This document shows positions 2,343-45,100 of a stretch of DNA of 64,000 bases, piece by piece. Positions within the stretch are counted from its first letter, which is position 1, and each line of letters starts with the position of its first letter. The notes beneath the pieces were generated by a model. That model was not told the DNA's origin. It saw only the letters and a list, made by a program, of their open reading frames with translations, and did not search any database. The translations under genes and the position numbers were made by a program. Source of the DNA: Lepidodermella squamata (taxonomy: Eukaryota > Animalia > Gastrotricha); contig JBLDXI010000031.1 of the NCBI GenBank assembly GCA_047495785.1, positions 1 through 64,000 on the forward strand. Direction: 5' to 3'.

Positions 2343-5300
2343 GAACCACGGCAAAATGAACAACAGAGATTAGGAATTTGTATGAGAAAGTTAATATGCC
2401 ACGGCATAAGCATACATGACCGCTGTTACTTCGGTCAATTTCGTAGAAAATAAAGACTAATTTTAATTCCCAAGAAAATTGTATGAGAATGTAGATAGAA
2501 TTCGGGCGGAATCATGAGAGGCTGCCGATAGATAGAAAGGAAAAGTAAGAGAGTGAAACAAACCTCGCGGACCGATAGGTCCAGCATTGCCCTTCGAGCC
2601 ACGGCTGCCCATAAGACCTCTCGATCCTTGGCTACCTTGTTCACCCTTCGAGCCTTGAGATCCTTGAGAGCCCTTAGATCCTTGGCTGCCCTGCTCACCC
2701 TTTGAACCTTGGCTTCCCTGAGCGCCCTTCGAGCCCTGCGAACCTTGTTCGCCCTTCGAGCCCTGGCTGCCTTGTTGCCCCTTCGAACCTTGAGAACCCT
2801 GAGCACCCTTTGAGCCTTGACTACCTTGGGCGCCTTTAGATCCTTGTGATCCTTGTTCACCCTTTGATCCTTGGCTACCTTGCGCTCCCTTAGAGCCCTG
2901 CGAGCCTTGCTCGCCCTTAGATCCTTGTGAACCCTGAGCTCCCTTAGAACCTTGAGATCCCTGAGAACCCTTTGAGCCTTGAGAGCCCTGAGCGCCCTTT
3001 GAGCCTTGGCTGCCCTGAGCACCCTTCGAGCCTTGAGATCCCTGAGCACCCTTTGATCCCTGCGGGCCTTGTGCGCCCTTGGATCCTTGAGAACCTTGAT
3101 CGCCTTTGTCGCCCTTGTCACCTGGATAAAAATTAAATAAATCAAAACGCAAAACAGCCAATGTTCGAAAACTCACCCTTGGATCCTTGTGGTCCCATAG
3201 GTCCGATGGGTCCTATGAAAAAAGAAGACATATCAAGTCAAATATCGATTATGGACATTGTTATCATACCGATTGATCCTTGCGGGCCTTGAGAACCTTG
3301 CGAACCGAGATCCCCTTTCTGGCCCTTGGAGCCTTGGCTGCCTTGTTGACCTTTAGATCCTTGCGATCCCTGAGCGCCCTTGGAGCCTTGGCTACCTTGC
3401 GCACCCTTGGAGCCCTGTGAACCTTGGGCACCTTTGGAGCCTTGCGAGCCCTGTGCGCCCTTCGAACCCTGACTGCCTTGAGCACCCTTGGAGCCTTGGC
3501 TACCTTGCTGACCCTTCGAACCCTGGGATCCTTGGGCACCCTTGGAGCCTTGCGAGCCCTGAGCACCCTTCGATCCTTGGCTGCCTTGTTCTCCTTTCGA
3601 GCCTTGACTGCCTTGAGCACCCTTCGATCCTTGAGAACCCTGAGCACCCTTAGATCCTTGCGATCCTTGAGCACCTTTAGAGCCCTGAGAGCCTTGGGCA
3701 CCTTTGCTACCCTGGGAGCCTGCAACAGATAACAAATGTACGCATGAATTGAAGGTTTGAAATGAAAAACATACCTTGTTCGCCCTTCGAGCCTTGTGAA
3801 CCTTGGGCACCCTTAGAGCCTTGATCACCTTTCTGTCCCTTGTCGCCTTTAGAGCCTTGAGAACCTTGACTGCCTTGTGGACCAGTCGGGCCTAGAAAAT
3901 TTCATTAGACATAAGAAAATTTGCCACGGAATTATAGTGAATTCCCTACCCATTGGTCCAATAGGTCCGATCGAACCTTGGCTGCCCTGGCTGCCTTTCT
4001 CGCCTTTAGATCCTTGTGAACCTTGTGCGCCTTTCGAGCCCTGCGAGCCTTGTGCGCCTTTCGAGCCTTGAGAACCTTGGTCGCCCTTTGAGCCCTGGGA
4101 ACCTGTTGAAAATATGCAGTAAAATCATGCATCTGTAAAAACATGGTAAAATAGCACAAACCTTGGCTGCCCTTAGACCCTTGACTGCCTTGAGCACCTT
4201 TCGAGCCCTGAGAGCCTGCATTGATAAAATGAAAAATAATCGAAAATGTTAGGGTAGAAACATACCTTGTTGACCCTTCGAGCCCTGGCTTCCTTGGTCT
4301 CCTTTGTCTCCTGCGCATAACAAAGAAATGGTCAAATCGATAAAATCAAAAGAAAATGAAACGTACCCTTCGAGCCTTGAGCACCCTTAGAACCTTGGGA
4401 GCCTGCCCAGAACAAAAAATATCATTAAGAGTTTCAGATCACTTCATTTGACAAACCTTGATCGCCCTTAGAACCCTTCGATCCTTGCGAGCCATGATCA
4501 CCTTTCTCACCTTTGGAACCTTGGCTTCCCTGAGCACCCTTTGAGCCCTGAGAGCCCTGAGCACCCTTGGAACCTTGAGAACCTTGCGCACCTTTAGATC
4601 CCTGACTGCCCTGCTCTCCTTTCGATCCTTGTGATCCTTGGGCACCTTTGGAACCCTGAGATCCTTGAGAACCTTTGCTTCCTTGGCTGCCTTGGTCTCC
4701 CTTTTGGCCTATAAAGAATTGAAAAATTAGCTCAAGAAATTAAATGAAGTTAAGAAAACGGACCCTTTGAACCTTGAGGACCCATTGGACCGATCGGACC
4801 TAAATAACAATGTCATGAAGAATCAATTATGGAATACACGTTTAATCCTACCGATAGATCCTTGCGAACCATGATCACCTTTCTCGCCCTTCGAGCCTTG
4901 ACTGCCTTGTGCACCCTTTGAGCCTTGGGAACCCTGAGCACCCTTCGAACCCTGTGAGCCTTGAGAACCCTTAGAACCTTGAGAACCTTGAGCGCCCTTT
5001 GATCCTTGACTGCCTTGAGCACCCTTGGAGCCCTGTGAGCCTTGAGCGCCCTTAGAGCCTTGCGAGCCCTGTTCACCCTTCGAACCCTGACTGCCTTGAG
5101 CACCCTTAGAGCCCTGAGATCCTTGCGCACCCTTCGAACCTTGGGAGCCTTGGGCACCCTTGGATCCTTGCGATCCTTGTTCACCCTTTGAGCCTTGAGA
5201 ACCTTGAGCACCCTTCGACCCTTGAGATCCCTGGGCACCCTTCGAGCCTTGGCTACCCTGTTCACCTTTACTACCCTGTGAACCTGTAAATACAAAGTAG

Positions 5301-19483: not shown

Positions 19484-21732
19484 ATGCAAGCAAAAACATC
19501 TCAAGTTGCCTTTGGAAAGGCTGAACAGTTTGAACAAATCAGAAAGGACTGCTTACGCCGACGGCAGAAGTTTGAAGATCCAGGTGAGTAATTTCGTTTT
19601 GAGCTTTTCCATCTTTATACCTTACACCACATTATTTCAACAGAATTCCCTGCTTCCGATCAGTCTATTTATTACAGCAGCCAGCCAAGTCAGAAGTTTG
19701 AATGGCTTCGCCCAGATGTAAGATTCGTTTCATTTTGTTGATGATATCTTGAAAGTTATTTTTCATTTAGCAAATATGCTTCAAGTATCAACTTAAGCCG
19801 GAGTTGATAAGAATGGGCAGCCCAACAATGCGCTTCGATGTAGTCCAAGGCGATTACGGTGATTGCTGGCTGGTTTCCGCTTTTGCTGGCATGTCAGAGA
19901 ATGAAGAGCTATTGTTTCGCGTCGTTCCTCGGGGTCAAAGCTTCAGCGAAGACTGGTATACTGGCATGTTTCGCTTCCGCTTCTGGCGATTCTCGCAGTG
20001 GGAAGATGTGATCATCGACGACCGTTTACCCACCATTAATGGCCAATTGGTTTTTGTTCACTCGCAATCCATTGCTGAGTTTTGGCCTGCTTTAGTCGAA
20101 AAAGCCCTGGCAAAGCTGTATGGCTCGTATGAGGCGATGAAGAGTGCTTTGTTGGGTGATATCCTTACCGATCTGACTGGCGGATTAGCCGAGTCTTATC
20201 TGCTCCACGGCTCTGGCGCTAACCTGCCGAAAAATATTATCAACGTCATGTTCAAAGCACTCGAGCGCGAGTCAATTATTTCCTGCAGCATTCAATCTGG
20301 CAATCGCAATGCCGGAGCGTCGTTCCAACCAGGGCAGCGTCTCCCTAACGGTCTGATATTAGGTCATACTTACTGCGTGACCGACCTGCGAGAAATTCGA
20401 CTTATCACTCAAACTGGCGAGATTCCATTTGTTTTAGTCCGTCTGCGCAACCCGTGGGGGTCCCGGGTTGACTGGAATGGCGCATGGTCTGAGCGCAGTG
20501 AAGAATGGCAGTCGATTCCCGATGAAGACCGCCGAGAAATGGGTCTTGTTGTTCGAGGAGAAGCCGAGTTCTGGATGGAATTCCACGACTTCCTTGCTAA
20601 TTTTGATACGCTAGACCTGTGTAATCTAGCACCTGATGCTCCCGTCCGAACACCAAGGCGCTGGTCTGGTCGATTGTTCAACGGCCGTTGGATCCGTGGG
20701 GCTAACGCTGGTGGTCGGCCAGAATGCCGCGAAACTCACTGGACCAACCCTCAAGTCCGTCTTTGGTTACGAGAGCTGGATGATGACGAAGAAGGGCTGT
20801 GCTCTTTAATCGTCGAATTGGTGCAGCGAGACGAACGTGGCGTCAAGTATCGCGCCCCAAATCACGCCCATATCGGCTTTGCAATCTACCAACTACCCCC
20901 TGGGGGTGAACCGCCAGTCAACGACGAGGGCACAGCGATTGTTCAAGAGCCGCAAAATCGGGCGTTTTTCGACACGCATCAAATAATTGTCCACTCTGGT
21001 TGTTTCGCGAATAGCCGACAGGTCACTCGACGTTTCCTACTCGCCCCGGGAGATTACCTGCTGGTTCTAGCGACCTACGAGCCTAACATACCTGCTTCCT
21101 TCACTGTGCGTTGTTTCTTTGAGAAACCTGGCAATACGGCTCAGTTGCTGGACAACGACGCCGAATTAGTCAACCCGCAAGCTTCACTACTCGGCCCGCC
21201 ACTGACCCTGAGTGAATCACTGGCCCCGGAGGCCCATGAACGATTAAGGTGGTTGTTCTACGAAAGCGCTGGCGAGGAGATGAAAGTTCAGGTTTCGAAT
21301 CTACCCCAAATTTTGGCAGCTGCTTTCAATAACGAGTTCGAAATAAGTCAAACGACAGCCCGAGCTTTGTCTCTACTTGTCGACTCCGACCGAACTGGCT
21401 TTGTCGACTACAACGGATTCGCAGCTCTGTTCCGCCTGGTTGGCCAGTGGCGTCGTTCCTGGTTTGAAAATCGAACTAACGACCGGGCTGCAACGTTGGA
21501 AGCGCATCAATTAGGCCCGGCTTTATTAGCAATCGGGTTCAAGTTACCTTCCAGAGCTGTAGCTGCGATTTTACTGCTTCACGGTGATCAAAAAATGGGT
21601 CTGAGCCTTGATTCTTTCCTCACCACGGCCGCCCGCCTCCACCAGGCCGGGTCTACATTCAAGAAACTGCAACACAACGGTCGTTTAGTTCTCAGTCTCG
21701 ATCAGTGGCTTGAAGAAGCTATGGTCGCTTAA
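19484..21732 (+). CDS. Classical calpain (CysPc-C2L-PEF)
   Basis: Exons 19484-19583, 19644-19717 and 19771-21732 give FEDPEFPA...WLRP. Catalytic motifs QGDYGDCW, GHTY and LRNPWG, then AGG...NPQ (C2L) and an EF-hand-like DSDRTGFVDYNGF. Confidence 0.95.
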
Positions 21733-22109
21733 TTTGTTATTTTATAAGGTGGCAGTTCTGAGGTTGTGCTATTATAAAACAAACCCGCTTGCACGCGAAC
21801 AATTATTATTACTGGCATTCCGGTTTATGAAACTGTTTCTCGGCTATTATCTGTTTGGTACAACCAATTATTCGGTGTGGCATCTAATGCCACATATTTC
21901 CAGTTTTTTCCATCGCTACTCTGAAGCAACGCATTTTTATTGTTTATTATTATCGCTCTCAACTCCTTTTAGCAGCGCATTTTTCTTACTGCCGAATAAA
22001 TTAACTCGCTAATTTTGTTTTATTTCTTTTAGATTTTATTTGAATTTTCACGGGAACGAATTAGCTGAAATAACATTATGGTGAGTTATATTATCAATTA
22101 TTTCTGGAA

Positions 22110-22243
22110 AAATCGCATTTTTATTTAATTTTAATTGAATTTTCCACTTCGAAAGTTTGATTTTTTTAAATGCGATCAAATTCTTAGCAGACTATTTACA
22201 GTTTTCATTGAGCTCCGGCTGATTGAAAATTGTTGCAACAACT
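22110..22243 (+). ncRNA. Possible divergent H/ACA snoRNA in intron 1
   Basis: Hairpin ATCGCATTT...AAATGCGAT, H box AGACTA, second hairpin ACAGTTTTCA...TGAAAATTGT, ACA at 22238. It lacks the shared guide of the other copies. Confidence 0.45.
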
Positions 22244-22344
22244 GCGTAAAATTTCCTTTATTTTCCAGAATGTTCCGAACAATTGTGATGCTGCTCCATT
22301 CTGTTGATCGAGGTGAGTGTTCAATTACTATCAGTCTTCGAAAG

Positions 22345-22483
22345 GGCACCCTATTAGTAGTTGACGCCGTCTGAAGAGTTCTTCTTTGGATCAGGCGTTG
22401 ATTCTCCCGCCAGGTGCGAGATCTATCGAATTTTCTGTTGAATGCATTTTTCGCTTGAAACGCGATCAATGTTTCAGACAATT
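22345..22483 (+). ncRNA. H/ACA snoRNA copy 1 (5' pocket predicted for 28S helix 69)
   Basis: GCACC...GGTGC stem with pocket strands TAGTAGT and CTCCCGCC, imperfect H box AGATCTA, second hairpin, ACA at 22478. Confidence 0.75.
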
Positions 22484-22609
22484 TCATACAATTTATGTTT
22501 TCTATTCCAGAGAATCAACAACAACTTTGGATAAAGTAGCCGCGAAGGTCGATTGATATACTTTCGATCGATAAACAAGGTGAGTGACTAAATTTGATTG
22601 AATTTTTCG

Positions 22610-22746
22610 GGCACCCTATTAGTAGTTGTTTGTGCTTAATTCCACATTCAATTCTCCCGCCAGGTGCGAGACTAAAATTCGATTTCGGGACTAGTTACTC
22701 GAATTAACGCTCCTCAATTCGAAATTTGTCTTGATTTTGAACATTT
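22610..22746 (+). ncRNA. H/ACA snoRNA copy 2
   Basis: Same 5' hairpin, H box AGACTA, second hairpin, ACA at 22741. Confidence 0.8.
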
Positions 22747-22834
22747 TTCATTTCAGATTCTTCTCGATCGAATGGAGCTAATGACTTCGAATGACTTTGA
22801 GGTTAGAATATTAAATATTTTTATTGGCATGAAG

Positions 22835-22976
22835 AGCACCCTGCTATTAGTAGTTGCCGCTTAGTCTCTTGTAGGCGTAGCGTCAATTCTCCCGCCAGGT
22901 GCGATACCAAAATTGTGTCAAGGCGTTTTTTCGATAGAATTCAATTCAATCGGAAGGTTATATGACTCGGACATTA
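22835..22976 (+). ncRNA. H/ACA snoRNA copy 3 (pockets for 28S H69 and 28S UAUGAC-U-GAACGCCU)
   Basis: H box ATACCA. The 3' pocket is AGGCGTT / GTTATA, with 14 nt from the pocket to ACA at 22971. Confidence 0.85.
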
Positions 22977-23077
22977 ATTTTCTTATTTTCCAGGTGCGCT
23001 TTGGCTCCGAGAAAAATCCGGCGATCTGGCTGAATTAAGCGATTTGTAAGTTATTAATACTATTTTATTCCAAGTCT

Positions 23078-23193
23078 GGCACCCTATTAGTAGTTGCTTG
23101 TGTAATCCCCACATGCGAGATTCAAACTGATTTCGAGATTTTTTCTCAAAATTATTCCCCATAATTTTTGGATCTTCTCGATTTTGAACAACC
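23078..23193 (+). ncRNA. H/ACA snoRNA copy 4 (degenerate 5' hairpin)
   Basis: Keeps GCACCCTATTAGTAGTTG but CTCCCGCC has decayed to ATCCCCAC; ACA at 23188. Confidence 0.6.
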
Positions 23194-23303
23194 AATTTTT
23201 TATTTCAGTTTTCGATAGCGGCATTTTTCGCGATAATTGTATCGGCAGTTCTTCACAATCAAAGGTAAATTTAGTTTTCATTTACCACTAGTAGTAGTTT
23301 TAG

Positions 23304-23446
23304 AGCACCCTATTAGTAGTTGCCGCTTGCTTTTTCTCGGAAAAGCGTAGCGTCATCTCTCCCGCCAGGTGCGATAAAGACATCGCTTCAAGGCGTTTTT
23401 TCGATAGATTTTCATTCAATCGAAAGGTTATATGACGCGGATATTA
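23304..23446 (+). ncRNA. H/ACA snoRNA copy 5 (close paralog of copy 3)
   Basis: Same two pockets as copy 3, imperfect H box, ATA variant of the ACA box at 23441. Confidence 0.78.
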
Positions 23447-23642
23447 ATGTCAATTTCTCCCATTTCAGCTAATTGGCCTCCAGACCTGTCAAATATGGTG
23501 CTAAAATTCTGACTTGATTTCCTGTGATATTTTATTATGGTGGATTCTTTTCAATAAAACTGATCACTTCATTTTGATTTGCGTTTATTTTGTTTTATTC
23601 ATAATTTTTGCTCTTAAATTAGACGACTTTTGAAGGTGAAAA

Positions 23643-26600
23643 ATGGCAGATGATGCCGCAAAGGACTTGCCATTTCGAGCCGAATACGCGAAAAGTGGCC
23701 GGGCAGGGTGTCGCGGGTGCAAGGAAACTATTTCTCAAGACTCGCTACGCCTCGCGGTCATGATCCAGAGCCCGCATTTCGACGGGAAAATGCCCAATTG
23801 GTACCACTACGCGTGTTTCTGGAAGAAAGCTCGAGTTCAGAAGACAGAAGATATTCACGGGTTTCACTCACTGCGGTGGGAAGATCAGCAGAAAATTGAG
23901 AAGCAAATCGGAGGAGGTGGGGCCGCGGGTGGAGATGCGGCTGCCTCGTCCGGAAAAGGCAAAGGCAAGGGCAAAAAAGGCGCCGCGGCAGCAGCAGCTG
24001 TTGATGATTCCGGGACACGAGATTTTAAGGTGGAATACGCGAAATCAGGCGGGTCCAAGTGCCGCGCTTGCGAGGAGAAAATTCCGAAAAATGAAGCTCG
24101 GTTAGGGAAAATGGACTACGAGTCTGACCAGGCGAAGATGTACGGACCTCAGGTGAGAATATTAAACTGAATTTAGCCGACTTTCGATAGCTGCTCTTCA
24201 AAACCGCTAGGCATTTTAATTATGAAATATATCAATAGGGCTTAACGGCGAATTATCCGCTCATTTACGCCGATCCTTGCAGTTGTTAATTGTTTAAATC
24301 GAAAATAATTTTGGTAAAATTTCAAAAAAATTTGAATCGCACAAATCTAATTCTGATTTCGGAAATGCTAAAAAATGTCAGATTTCTCGAAAAACTTGAT
24401 CGAAAATTTTTCTGATACGACTACTTTCAGAATCAATCAATATTTACTTGTTGGGTTTTATCTATTGAATCGTAATTTAACTGATTTTTCAGACTCTGTG
24501 GCACCACGTTCAATGTTTTGTTGATAAACGCGTCGATCTCGGCTTCACGACTGAATTGAATGTCGAAACGTGCGCCGGATTTGCGCAGCTCGAGAAGGAA
24601 GACCAACAGCGACTGGTCACCCTACTCGGCAAGGGCGAGTCATCGCGGCCGAAAAGTGTCACAAATCAGGATAAAGAGGACGGCAAGAAGTCGTCGAAAA
24701 AACGCAAGGCCAAGGACGAGCCGGATAACGAAGATTCGATCTCAACAACATCGACCGCGGTCGAGAATAAAAAAGCAAAGGACGATGTCGCCGAGCAACT
24801 CAAGTTGCAGAATAAAGAAATCTGGGAAGTTCGCGATAAATTACAAAATTCAGATTTGAGCACGCGAGATATGAAAGAATTGCTCGAATTCAACGACCAG
24901 CACGTGCCTGAGGCCGGGAAATTGATCGAACGACTCGCTGATTGCCTGCTATTCGGCGCTTTAGCCCTGTGCCCTGAATGTAAAAAGGGTCATTTAGTCC
25001 ACTCAGATACGTGCAATGCCTATCGTTGCACTGGTCAAATGACTGAATGGGCGAAATGTGCCTATCAAACTAAGACCCCGAAACGGAAAAAGATGGTATT
25101 TCCGGACGACCTCAAAGAATCGGTTGATATTTTCAAAAAATATAAATACAAAGCGAGAGAGCGAATTTTCCCGCCAGATCGCGTTAATCCCGTGAAAAAG
25201 GAGGAGGCTACTTCGAAAACTGACGATTCGAAACCGTTATCTCTGCTGAAATTTGTTGTCAGTGGTCGAATGACACGGCCTGTCAACGAATTGCGCCAGG
25301 CTTTGAGTAATTTAGGCGCTACAATAGCCGCTGATGTCGATGGCACGGTCATCGCCCTGGTCACGAGCTCAGCTGAGGCGAAAAAAGGCTCGGCGAAATC
25401 GAAAATAATCCAATCAGCCGAAACTGCCGATATCCACGTTGTCGGCGAGGAATTTATCACCGAAGTCCTTGAAGTGGCGAAAAATTCGAAATTGAAAGTT
25501 GTTGTTCAAGACCCGGGTCAACCTGCAGACCCGGTTCCGGACGGATTCACCAATTTGGCTGATTTGATTGTGAAACATCAGATTGTGCCGAATTGCGGTG
25601 GTAATGTCAATTCGAGGATTCGGTTGAATTTGGCGAAGTCGATGGGTATTGTTGCGAAATCAACTGCGGCGTTGAAATCGGGCCTGAAATCGGATTATAA
25701 AAGCGGCCCAGAAACGAAAAAGTTCAAGGTCAAAGGCCGCTCGGCCGTTGATCCAGACTCAGGTTAGTTCATTTTTTGAAAAAATATTTAAAAAAAGAAA
25801 TGTCGGAACATTTTACGCGAGAATATGTAATTGGTATAAATTTTCAGGAACAAAATTCAAGAACAAAAAAAATGTCTGAATCTAAGATTTAAATTAATTT
25901 TTGCAATTCCAAAACTAAAAAATTGAAAAAAATTATTATTTCGATTCAATTAATTTTTCGTAAATACGAAACCGAAACAATAGGTATTCTTTTTAGCCAT
26001 TTTGTTGCCTTTTTCAAGTAATCTCGCGTCTCGCGTATTATTTTCGGTCACATCTTCGGACTATTCGATACAGGCGGCGGTCAGAATAGCCGATCGTCGC
26101 CTCACTTTGCGTCCGTACATCAATTTTTCACGGCTTGAAAAGCCAACTTGACTACAAAGTCGATCGGTCGTTACCGTGGCCGAACGGGACAGATTTCAGT
26201 TGGACATTACATTTTCTCGTTAAATTCTTTTCCTAGGTTTGGACGACGAAGCTCACGTGCTGGAAGAAGGCTCTTGCATTTGGAATTGCGTCCTCAATTT
26301 GGTATCGATCGAAAACAAAATGAATTCCTACTACAGGCTACAATTGATAGAAAGCGACACCAAGTAAATTTTGTGATTTTTTTCCTCATTTTTTTTATAA
26401 TTTATTCCGAATTTTATCAGGAAAACTTGGTGGGTTTTCCGAGCTTGGGGTCGAATTGGCACAACCATTGGCAGCAACAAACTTGAGAGGTACTCGAGTA
26501 AGGACAAAGCCAAGGATAATTTCGAAGAGGTGTTTCTTGAAAAAACCGGCAATCCGTGGAATAAGGGCGCGTTTTCCCGCCAGAAAATCCCAGGCCGCTT

Positions 26601-42190: not shown

Positions 42191-45100
42191 ATGCATTCTA
42201 AAATGACGTCTCAAATGATGATGCAGACGAAGAAGGTTACCGCAGTTGCTGAACGTCGGCTTGACACTCAAGCGATTGTTCAAGGCAATATTGAAGAATT
42301 GAATCGTTACATCCAGCAGAACGAGTATCATTTGAAGTTGAAAGATCACGAGTTACGCCAAGCTGAGACTCATGTGAAGACGCTGAAAGATGAGTTGCAG
42401 AAGGCGCAGATTATGAACCAGCAGTTGGCGTCGAAAATGCAGGTTGAAGAGCGAGCGCGAGCTGATATTGTCGCGAGAACTCAAACTGTCCAACAAATGT
42501 ATTCGCGCTTGCTGGAAAATGCGAAAACTCTGGAGATTTCTTTCGCTAAAAGTTGATTACTCGCATTTCATCGTCGATTTTCTATGATTTTTCTTTCTGA
42601 TATTAGCTGAAGAGACTTGTAAATCAGCCTTAAAGAAAAACGATGAGCAAGAAGATCGAATTTTGAACCTCGAAAGTCGATTAGCCGAGCTTACTGAACT
42701 TGCTCTCCAGAAGGACGCTGAATACAAAAGTCGAGGTTGAAATTTTGTTAAATTTCGAGAATCGGAAATAGTTTTTCTAAAATATTTAGTCACCGATCTC
42801 AAGCGTGAGATGGAAGAGAACCAGGCGCATTTCGAATCTGTTACCAGTGATCTCAATCGATCGCTTGATTGCCGCCTAGAAGAAATCGAAGAACTGAGGC
42901 GCCAAAGGGAAAAATTGGATCTCGACCTGACAGAGAAGATCAAACAAATTGAAGCTGTATTGCTAGAAAATGGTCTAAATTTTGCAAAATTCTTCGTTAT
43001 TTGGATATCATCGCATATTTTTTACAGGTTCTCTATTGAAAAGAATCGAGGCTTTGGAAAATTTGAAGCAAGAAATCGAGTTGAAACTGAAAACTCAAAT
43101 CGAGCAATATGAAGCTTTGGACGAATCATTGAAAGCTACCAAAGCCGAGTTGGAAAAAAGCGAGGCGAATCTTTCGGCCAAAGAAGCAGAATTGGAATCC
43201 GCCAGCCGGCTGATTGCTGAACTCGAGACTCACATTGCTGATCTCAAGATAAAACTGGCTGAAAAATCGGACGAATCAGATAGCTTGAAAGCGAAGTTGT
43301 CCGACCAGATCGTTGAAACGGAGACAATTGGCGAATTAGCGTACAATTTCGCTTCGAAAATCGACTCCCTTGATCTCAATTTGACCGAAAAATCTCGCGA
43401 GAATGATTCGCTGAAAACTGATATTGCGACGCGTGAAGCCGAAGTCGAAGTTTTGAAGACAGAACTTGTTAATGAGAAATCGGCCCTGTCAGATTTGCTG
43501 GCGCGATTTGATGAAACGGATCGAAAATTGAATGGTTTAATGAGTGAGCGAGATGATTTGCTGAAAAACTTGGAAACGAAGGAAAAGAATGTCGCCGAGC
43601 TCAAGTGAGTTTTTTTGTAATAGGGCTCGAAATTCAGAAATACGTTCACAGAAATGTGAAAAATTCAGACTTTTTTTAGTGTCAGTGATAAAATAACTCT
43701 TTAGATTTTTTATGCTATTCTGATATTTCATTTTGTTTCAATTTAGATCCAGCATTGAAATTCTGCAAGTTGAAATCGAGGCTAAACAAGTGAAGATCGA
43801 TACGAGTGAAACAATGATCAAGGTAACAATTTTTGCGATTACGACCCATCTTAGTTTTTGATCTTTGAAAAATGTGATGTTGGAAGATTTTAAGTATAAA
43901 GATAGTTCAGCCACCTGAATTTAAACCGGTTTAATATTTTAAAAACCGATGAAGTTCGTAAATTGGGCGGTTCCCATTTAAGGATTAACATTTAATGTGG
44001 TTTCAAGTTTCAGTTTGCGCTTGGTGCCAATTTTCAAAATTTGGTCTAGCTAACAAATTATGTGAATATTGAAATCAGCGAAAATTGTTCGTTGAGCTTC
44101 TAATAATTTGTTCCACAAAACGCCGCCTTTCCGCATTAATTGTGTGAAGAGTGATGTAATGCGTGCGTAATGCATACGGTATACGATAGTGAATCGGTAG
44201 TATAAAGCTAGATGGGTGTATTAATCATCGGTTGTTATGCGCACTACTCCCTCGCACCGCCCTATTTACTTGTGTAGTCAGGATGGCCGAGCGGTCCAAG
44301 GCGCTGCGTTCAGGTCGCAGTCAGTTTCTACTGGCGTGGGTTCGAATCCCACTTCTGACACAATGTTTTTTCCTCTTTTTTATTTTTTATTTTTTATTTT
44401 TAGAATCTCGATGCTAAAATTGTGGAATTAACATCTGCATTGGCTTCTGCTAAAAATGAGGCGAAGTCATGCGAAGAAAAATGGCTGGGCGAAAGGGCTG
44501 ATTTTTTGGAAAAAATCCGGCTAGCTGAATTGGAAGCCACCGAAGCAAAACAGGAAATTTCAGCCCTTCAAGGCGCGAAATCGAAAATTGACCAGCAATT
44601 AACAGCTCAACGCTCTGAAACAAAAAAGGCCGAAGTCGCTCGTAAAGCTTTGCAGGAAGATCTAGAGAAGAAAAACGATGAAATCACGGCTTTGCGTCAG
44701 GAATTGGACGAAATGAAGGCGGATTCTGAGAAAACGGCTGGAAAATCGGATGAAAAACTGAAGAAAGCCCTGGAGAAACTGCATCAAGTCGAGGCTAATT
44801 ACTCGAAAAAATCGAAAGAAAACGACGAAATTTCGTCCGAATTATCAAAAATTCGAGACGATCTGAGTGAGAAATCTGATGAAATCGATAATTTAAAATC
44901 GAAAATCACCGATCTGGAGGAAAAATTGACGAAAGAGCGAAAAGCGGCGAAGGCTGCTGAGAAAAAATTGGAGGAGAAAGAGCGTGAATTTGCGGCGACG
45001 TTGGAGGCGGAGAAGGAGCAGCTGCGATCGCGATCTTACGTCAAATCAACGGAATCTGTGTTGCAGGAGGGTCCGCAGCAAGAAACCGAGCGAACGCCGG

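Follow-up and report, generated by a model that had tools for sequence, protein, structure and literature searches.

A spliced non-coding gene, which carries one copy of a repeated candidate small nucleolar RNA (snoRNA) of the H/ACA class in each of five consecutive introns, was found on the forward strand of a 64,000-nt stretch of the genome of the gastrotrich Lepidodermella squamata (assembly GCA_047495785.1, contig JBLDXI010000031.1, positions 1 to 64,000; referred to below as the window). Based on the structure of the host gene, the folds of the repeated element and its complementarity to ribosomal RNA (rRNA), the introns of this UHG-like gene probably release H/ACA pseudouridylation-guide snoRNAs of ∼135–150 nt. 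Four of the copies are predicted to direct the modification of a U at a universally conserved site, helix 69 of 28S rRNA, and two of these four are predicted to direct, in addition, the modification of a U in domain VI.

When sequencing runs were searched with the region and with copy 3 alone, only two contained it, one RNA run (X1) and one DNA-like run (X2), both of which were used as assembled contigs and compared over positions 21000–25000. According to the RNA contigs of X1, the host gene consists of seven exons and six introns, and all six introns are spliced at GT..AG, while the contigs of X2 cover the locus without a break. The host contig in X1 starts near 22066 and ends near 23545; the annotated start at 22033 lies upstream of the contig. 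The spliced host RNA has a length of ∼422 nt, its longest open reading frame (ORF) encodes 24 amino acids, and an AATAAA of the gene is located at 23553–23558. Transcribed and spliced, with no meaningful ORF and with its elements confined to introns, the locus is a UHG-type, non-coding host gene for snoRNAs. The coordinates of the gene and of the element copies are given in Table 1; each copy starts 29–38 nt from the 5′ splice site of its intron.

Table 1. Host gene, exons, introns and element copies in window coordinates, with the landmarks of each copy.
Feature	Position	Strand	5′ hairpin	H position	3′ box	3′ hairpin	Basis or relation
Non-coding snoRNA host gene	22033..23575	+					GT..AG joints in run X1 RNA contigs
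Host exons (outer ends approximate)	~22033-22080, 22269-22312, 22511-22579, 22757-22801, 22994-23045, 23209-23264, 23469-~23575	+					
Host introns 1-6	22081-22268, 22313-22510, 22580-22756, 22802-22993, 23046-23208, 23265-23468	+					X1 contigs
Intron 1 relic	22133..22204	+					resembles 3′ half of copy 1 (local alignment z 5.0, 0/500 shuffles)
Copy 1	22344..22493	+	stem 22346-50/22413-17; CTCCCGCC 22404-11	AGATCT (not ANANNA)	ACA at 22478 or 22488		
Copy 2	22609..22746	+	stem 22611-15/22663-67; CTCCCGCC 22654-61	AGACTA 22669-74 (canonical H box)	ACA 22741-43		
Copy 3	22834..22976	+	stem 22836-40/22898-902; GTAGT 22850-54; CTCCCGCC 22889-96	ATACCA 22904-09 (H box)	ACA 22971-73	lower stem 22914-19/22964-69; arms AAGGCGTT 22920-27, GTTATAT 22957-63	
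Copy 4	23077..23193	+		AGATTC	ACA 23188-90	homologue of the copy 2 hairpin	decayed paralogue of copy 2
Copy 5	23303..23446	+	stem 23305-09/23368-72; CTCCCGCC 23359-66	ATAAAG (not ANANNA)	ATA 23441-43	lower stem 23384-89/23434-39; arms 23390-97, 23427-33	paralogue of copy 3

The five copies are tied together by exact repeats beyond chance. The 18-mer GCACCCTATTAGTAGTTG was found exactly at 22346, 22611, 23079 and 23305 (0.02 occurrences expected by chance), and copy 3 carries a version of it with a 3-nt insertion at 22836. The repeat CTCCCGCCAGGTGCGA was found exactly at 22404, 22654, 22889 and 23359 (0.22 expected). It is missing from copy 4, in which an ∼18-nt deletion relative to copy 2 has removed it; this copy retains its 5′ arm but has lost its 3′ arm together with the 3′ strand of its lower stem; its 5′ hairpin cannot form, and copy 4 is dead. 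A sixth copy was not found anywhere in the window. In the intron 1 relic the 5′ hairpin is absent and the fold is not significant (z −0.17). An earlier reading of the DNA from its letters alone (the sequence-only reading) had described related elements in five consecutive introns and had regarded copy 4 as decayed; both descriptions proved accurate, with each copy lying in its own spliced intron.

As shown by the predicted folds, the hairpin-hinge-hairpin-ACA/AUA architecture is present in copies 1, 2, 3 and 5 and absent from copy 4. In the whole-element minimum-energy folds of copies 1–3, the 5′ hairpin was formed, with a lower stem of 5 bp (GCACC/GGUGC) and an upper stem that varies, the two separated by an internal loop, and copy 5 gave the expected 5′ hairpin only when this hairpin was folded alone. 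When the 3′ hairpins of copies 3 and 5 were folded alone, the lower stem led into an internal loop that was open and then into an upper stem of 9 bp, and the ACA of copy 3 and the AUA of copy 5 are located one nucleotide past the lower stem. As read from the sequence, an ACA or ATA comes after the 3′ lower stem in each of the five copies. The 3′ hairpins of the other copies are of different kinds. That of copy 2 is nearly all paired (fold z −3.86), and between copies 2 and 4 its pairs are retained via changes from G-U to G-C and from G-U to A-U; on these models copies 2 and 4 have a structural 3′ hairpin that lacks an open pocket. In the 3′ hairpin of copy 1, a canonical pocket was not found. 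Complementarity was also observed, in copies 3 and 5 (22889–22927 and 23359–23397), between the first pocket's 3′ arm (CCCGCC) and the second pocket's 5′ arm (GGCG).

For the prediction of rRNA targets, eukaryotic ribosomal DNA (rDNA) was taken from metagenomes by a 22-nt helix 69 pattern, which gave 120 loci; two complete units of small subunit (SSU), 5.8S and large subunit (LSU) rRNA were confirmed with Rfam. Every U of one complete SSU/5.8S/LSU unit was scanned under the H/ACA rule, according to which the target U and the nucleotide after it remain unpaired, with the 3′ arm of the guide bound to the rRNA on their 5′ side and the 5′ arm bound on their 3′ side. The target sequences proposed for the two pockets are both present in eukaryotic LSU rRNA. 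When the 3′ pocket of copies 3 and 5 was scanned, the top match was UAUGAC-U-GAACGCCU (6 + 7 bp, gapless), a score that none of 300 shuffled arms equalled. When the 5′ pocket shared by copies 1, 2, 3 and 5 was scanned, the top match was GGCGGGAG-U-AACUAU (8 + 5 bp), and the second-best match was clearly weaker. By alignment with E. coli 23S rRNA, the helix 69 target is equivalent to U1911 and the domain VI target to U2746.

The positions of the boxes agree with these matches. From the start of CTCCCGCC to the hexamer at the H position there are 15 nt in copies 1, 2, 3 and 5, and from the start of GTTATA to the ACA of copy 3 or the ATA of copy 5 there are 14 nt; both distances comply with the rule of 15 ± 1 nt (PMC8522698), in a paper that also cautions that such guide rules are neither sufficient nor strictly necessary. 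A bipartite pocket with an unpaired U-N at 14–16 nt from a box was found in the 3′ hairpin of copies 3 and 5 and in the 5′ hairpin of copies 1, 2, 3 and 5, and was not found in the 3′ hairpins of copies 1, 2 and 4. Copy 3 is the most canonical predicted double guide of the set. The sequence-only reading had already paired the first pocket with helix 69 and the second with UAUGAC-U-G-AACGCCU, had quoted the same two distances and had called the elements intronic H/ACA snoRNAs; the rRNA scan, the folds and box positions, and the spliced non-coding host are all in line with what it proposed.

Copies 3 and 5 were compared column by column. None of the 26 nt predicted to pair with rRNA differ between them, as against 28 of 122 other columns (p 0.004, with the set of pairing nucleotides defined post hoc), which points to selection on the guides; when the arms were defined broadly, the contrast (5/42 vs 23/106 differences) was not significant.

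Several observations weigh against the interpretation of the elements as working guides. The rRNA that was scanned belongs to eukaryotes from metagenomes and not to this species. The score of the shared 5′ pocket was equalled by 10–22 of 300 shuffles (∼3–7%), and the pairing with helix 69 either leaves 2–3 guide nucleotides unpaired beside the upper stem or requires the bottom pairs of that stem to open. Within the 5′ arm, CUAUUA is conserved and lies outside this pairing. At the second site, the 5′ flank differs among eukaryotes (UAUGAC, UAUGGC, UAUGCC and UAUAAC). An ANANNA H box is present only in copies 2 and 3; copies 1, 4 and 5 deviate at the sixth position of the box, and their hinges contain no other ANANNA. 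When the whole RNA of copy 5 was folded, and when copies 3 and 5 were folded jointly, pairing between the two guide arms was favoured over the H/ACA fold. In the X1 contigs the exons are covered and the depth within the introns is zero, so that X1 attests to the transcription and splicing of the host and not to an accumulation of small RNAs. The family search that the sequence-only reading had suggested was run against Rfam, and its outcome was negative: at the gathering threshold, no H/ACA family matched anywhere in the window, and at E values up to 10 (for the region, and for copy 3 alone) only snoR77 (20 bits vs 47) and SNORA69 (12.6 bits vs 47) appeared, both at chance level. As far as the folding models go, the elements are H/ACA RNAs by architecture and lie outside every curated family.

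Some of these observations would also suit a repeat that is not a snoRNA. Such a repeat, for instance the remnant of a mobile element or an element acting in cis on splicing or structure, would have been carried along with the duplicated exon–intron units and would match rRNA by coincidence. The missing Rfam family, the three of five copies without a canonical H box, the uncovered introns in X1 and the modest z-scores of the whole-element folds (−1.9 to −3.0) are consistent with such an origin. However, conservation falls on exactly those parts that an H/ACA RNA needs, namely the lower stem, the two strands of the pocket and the beginning of the hinge, whereas the upper stems vary in sequence and retain their pairing. 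In two independent instances a bipartite match to conserved rRNA brackets a U, 14–15 nt from the boxes, one of these matches being unequalled in 300 shuffles, and the spliced host with its short ORF resembles other snoRNA hosts. We therefore consider a repeat of this kind unlikely.

The conserved 5′ strand CCCUAUUAGU was also considered as a second antisense element directed at ACUAAUAGGG in domain V of 28S rRNA, where it would either be an additional guide or help to bind the rRNA as an accessory site. Its 10-nt complement, GATTGTTCACCCACTAATAGGGAACG, was found in 5 of the fetched LSU loci, and CUAUUAGU is retained in all five copies, although the pairing with helix 69 needs only GUAGU. However, for a canonical guide a U would have to lie two nucleotides 5′ of the stretch that pairs, a position at which the rRNA carries a C; two of the ten nucleotides of the element lie in the lower stem; and the element is interrupted, by a 3-nt insertion in copy 3 and by a 4-nt insertion together with a G>T change in the copy 5 allele of X2. 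A 10-mer match in ∼5 kb of rRNA is, moreover, not rare for a conserved stretch of ∼40 nt. Such a second element is very improbable. As a canonical second guide, CCCTATTAGT was rejected on account of its non-guide geometry, with a C at the target, and the indels in the element.

The history of the copies can be followed from their spacing. Copies 3 and 5, spaced by 470 bp, show 82% identity over 120 nt; copies 2 and 4 are spaced by 468 bp, and the similarity of their 3′ halves is significant (z 6.7). The pairs 2/4 and 3/5 at 468–470 bp indicate that a two-unit block of ∼470 bp was duplicated, and the similarity between the 3′ half of copy 1 and the intron 1 relic indicates at least one further unit duplication. 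The exons between the copies are no longer alignable. The duplication of exon–intron units that had been proposed from the sequence is supported by this block and by the resemblance of intron 1 to intron 2.

Between the three classes of 3′ halves, no clear alignment was obtained (copy 2 vs 3, z 0.4–1.7; copy 1 vs 2, z −0.5 to 2.0). This could be taken as a sign of modular exchange, in which recombination would have joined a constant 5′ hairpin to 3′ hairpins unrelated to one another, the orphan 3′ hairpins of copies 1, 2 and 4 being new guides with unknown targets; for other snoRNAs, it has been proposed that halves of guides recombined (PMC2780460). However, the upper stems of the common 5′ hairpin, whose positions make them homologous, align no better from one class to another (z at most 1), so that a swap is unnecessary. 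Weak residual similarity between 3′ halves was also detected (copy 1 vs 3, 16/1000; combined three-class statistic, 22/1000, p about 0.02), and it includes AAUGCAUUUUUCG of copy 1, which corresponds to the guide arm AAGGCGUUUUUUCG of copy 3. Upper stems as diverged as the 3′ hairpins indicate that the classes are old and that unconstrained similarity has been lost, without any need for an exchange of hairpins. When the orphan 3′ hairpins of copies 1, 2 and 4 were scanned under several pocket definitions against one rDNA unit from another species, no match above shuffled arms was obtained, and in copies 2 and 4 the 3′ hairpin forms a closed helix with pair-preserving changes. Modular exchange is accordingly improbable. 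The sequence-only reading had held that the 3′ hairpins were swapped and that duplication was generating new guides, and had asked for a target search with the orphan pockets; with the 5′ upper stems equally diverged and that search empty above the shuffles, neither of the two claims was sustained.

There is likewise little probability that the orphan 3′ hairpins of copies 1 and 2, together with the conserved CUAUUAGU, are newly evolved functional modules rather than products of decay, whether guides or accessory binding sites. The targets of such modules would lie outside the conserved rRNA core, in expansion segments, small nuclear RNAs or messenger RNAs. If this were true, the locus would be a live example of new H/ACA specificities arising from the duplication of exon–intron units.

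We prefer an explanation by duplication and decay. The ancestor would most likely have been one double-guide snoRNA, with a 5′ pocket directed to the helix 69 U and a 3′ pocket directed to the domain VI U. Exon–intron units would then have been duplicated in tandem, including the two-unit block that yielded the pairs 2/4 and 3/5, and the resulting redundancy (four to five guides for helix 69) would have allowed individual modules to decay, in a process of birth and death. Copies 3 and 5 would thereby have retained both guides, and copies 1 and 2 the helix 69 guide together with a structural 3′ hairpin and its ACA; copy 4 would have lost its 5′ pocket, and a relic alone would remain in intron 1. 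By extrapolation from established H/ACA small nucleolar ribonucleoprotein (snoRNP) biology, each spliced intron would be debranched and trimmed to a stable core protected by the snoRNP, and the dyskerin-type particle assembled on it would pseudouridylate the helix 69 U and, in the case of copies 3 and 5, the domain VI U as well.

Variation within the locus was seen in run X2. The X2 allele of copy 5 carries a CTAT insertion after 23309 and four substitutions in the copy, three of them at the guide arms or the H position. In the X2 contig covering 22337–23514, all six substitutions and the CTAT insertion fall within the last 170 nt (23309–23475), which span copy 5 and the start of exon 7, and the preceding ∼970 nt contain none. 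Gene conversion, a relaxation of constraint on copy 5 or a change of haplotype within the contig may account for this clustering. The segment 22124–22366 is represented in X2 by two versions, one identical to the window and the other with 23 differences and 5 gaps in 238 nt (∼10% divergent), which suggests divergent haplotypes or a second paralogous locus. In X1, a contig of low depth (4.2) joins 23143 to 23250 and 23193 to 23300 on opposite strands in the copy 4 region (23143–23300); these joints may be an assembly chimera or a fold-back artefact.

The host gene is flanked on its own strand, across short gaps (19804–24170), by a calpain gene that ends at 21732 and by PARP1, which starts at 23643. 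In X1 the calpain contig ends at 21889 and PARP1 is covered from 23696, and no read-through was seen among the contigs at 19804–24170. Elsewhere in the window, the sole Rfam match at the gathering threshold was an 84-nt transfer RNA with a long variable arm (44277–44360), the anticodon loop of which, judged by eye, suggests Leu(CAG).

Genes of similar organization are known from several groups. Vertebrate genes of the UHG/GAS5 type, the intronic clusters of Drosophila and rice, and the UHG-like clusters of Neurospora likewise produce spliced RNAs that have a poly(A) signal and tiny ORFs. In these hosts and clusters, too, each intron carries one snoRNA, and tandem duplication has given rise to paralogous isoforms (PMC2780460). 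The present gene differs from these hosts and clusters in that all five introns contain paralogues of a single H/ACA family in varied states of decay. It is an ordinary type of snoRNA host gene grown by tandem duplication, and the mechanism is not new.

Position 3737 of human 28S rRNA is presumably the helix 69 U equivalent to E. coli U1911, to judge from the E. coli alignment and from the spacing of the pseudouridines in human helix 69. According to a review table, ACA23 (human SNORA23) guides 28S-3737 and 28S-4331 (PMC6466398). By our own mapping, SNORA23 thus shares the helix 69 target with the present elements, whereas its second target is 28S-4331 and not the domain VI site. No homology to SNORA23 was detected in sequence or structure (no Rfam match at E values up to 10), and the likeness is functional rather than familial. 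SNORA17 (ACA17) is said to guide the U in UAUGAC-U-GAACGCC (old 4659), and no Rfam match to it was found here. Of the two human assignments made in the sequence-only reading, ACA23 at 28S-3737 agrees with the table cited, and ACA17 at 4659 was not confirmed in the literature consulted, which did not reveal a counterpart in Drosophila for the helix 69 site either. Bacterial RluD makes pseudouridines 1911, 1915 and 1917 of 23S rRNA; the same helix 69 position is thus modified in bacteria, but by a stand-alone protein with no guide RNA.

Previous studies of the fungal snoRNAome and of Neurospora CD5/U24 have shown that individual hairpins and antisense elements evolve as modules in their own right, that paralogues keep one guide and lose the other, that target switches and redundant guides occur, and that the same site is served by different families across lineages (PMC5824354, PMC2780460). 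Given that lineage-specific guide pairings are documented, a pairing of guides that differs from the human one is not surprising here. The fungal and Neurospora cases were inferred across species, whereas in the present locus several stages adjoin within one gene.

The analysis supplies a well-supported snoRNA annotation in a poorly annotated invertebrate genome. It predicts two pseudouridines in conserved and functionally important parts of 28S rRNA, namely helix 69, which is part of the intersubunit bridge B2a, and domain VI. Within 1.5 kb, the host gene displays several stages in the birth-and-death evolution of a two-module guide RNA, from the predicted double guide, through single guides with a structural hairpin and a dead 5′ pocket, to a relic. 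Because the independent evolution of hairpins, redundant guides and lineage-specific pairings are already documented, the locus is a teaching case for the evolution of H/ACA snoRNAs rather than the source of a new principle.

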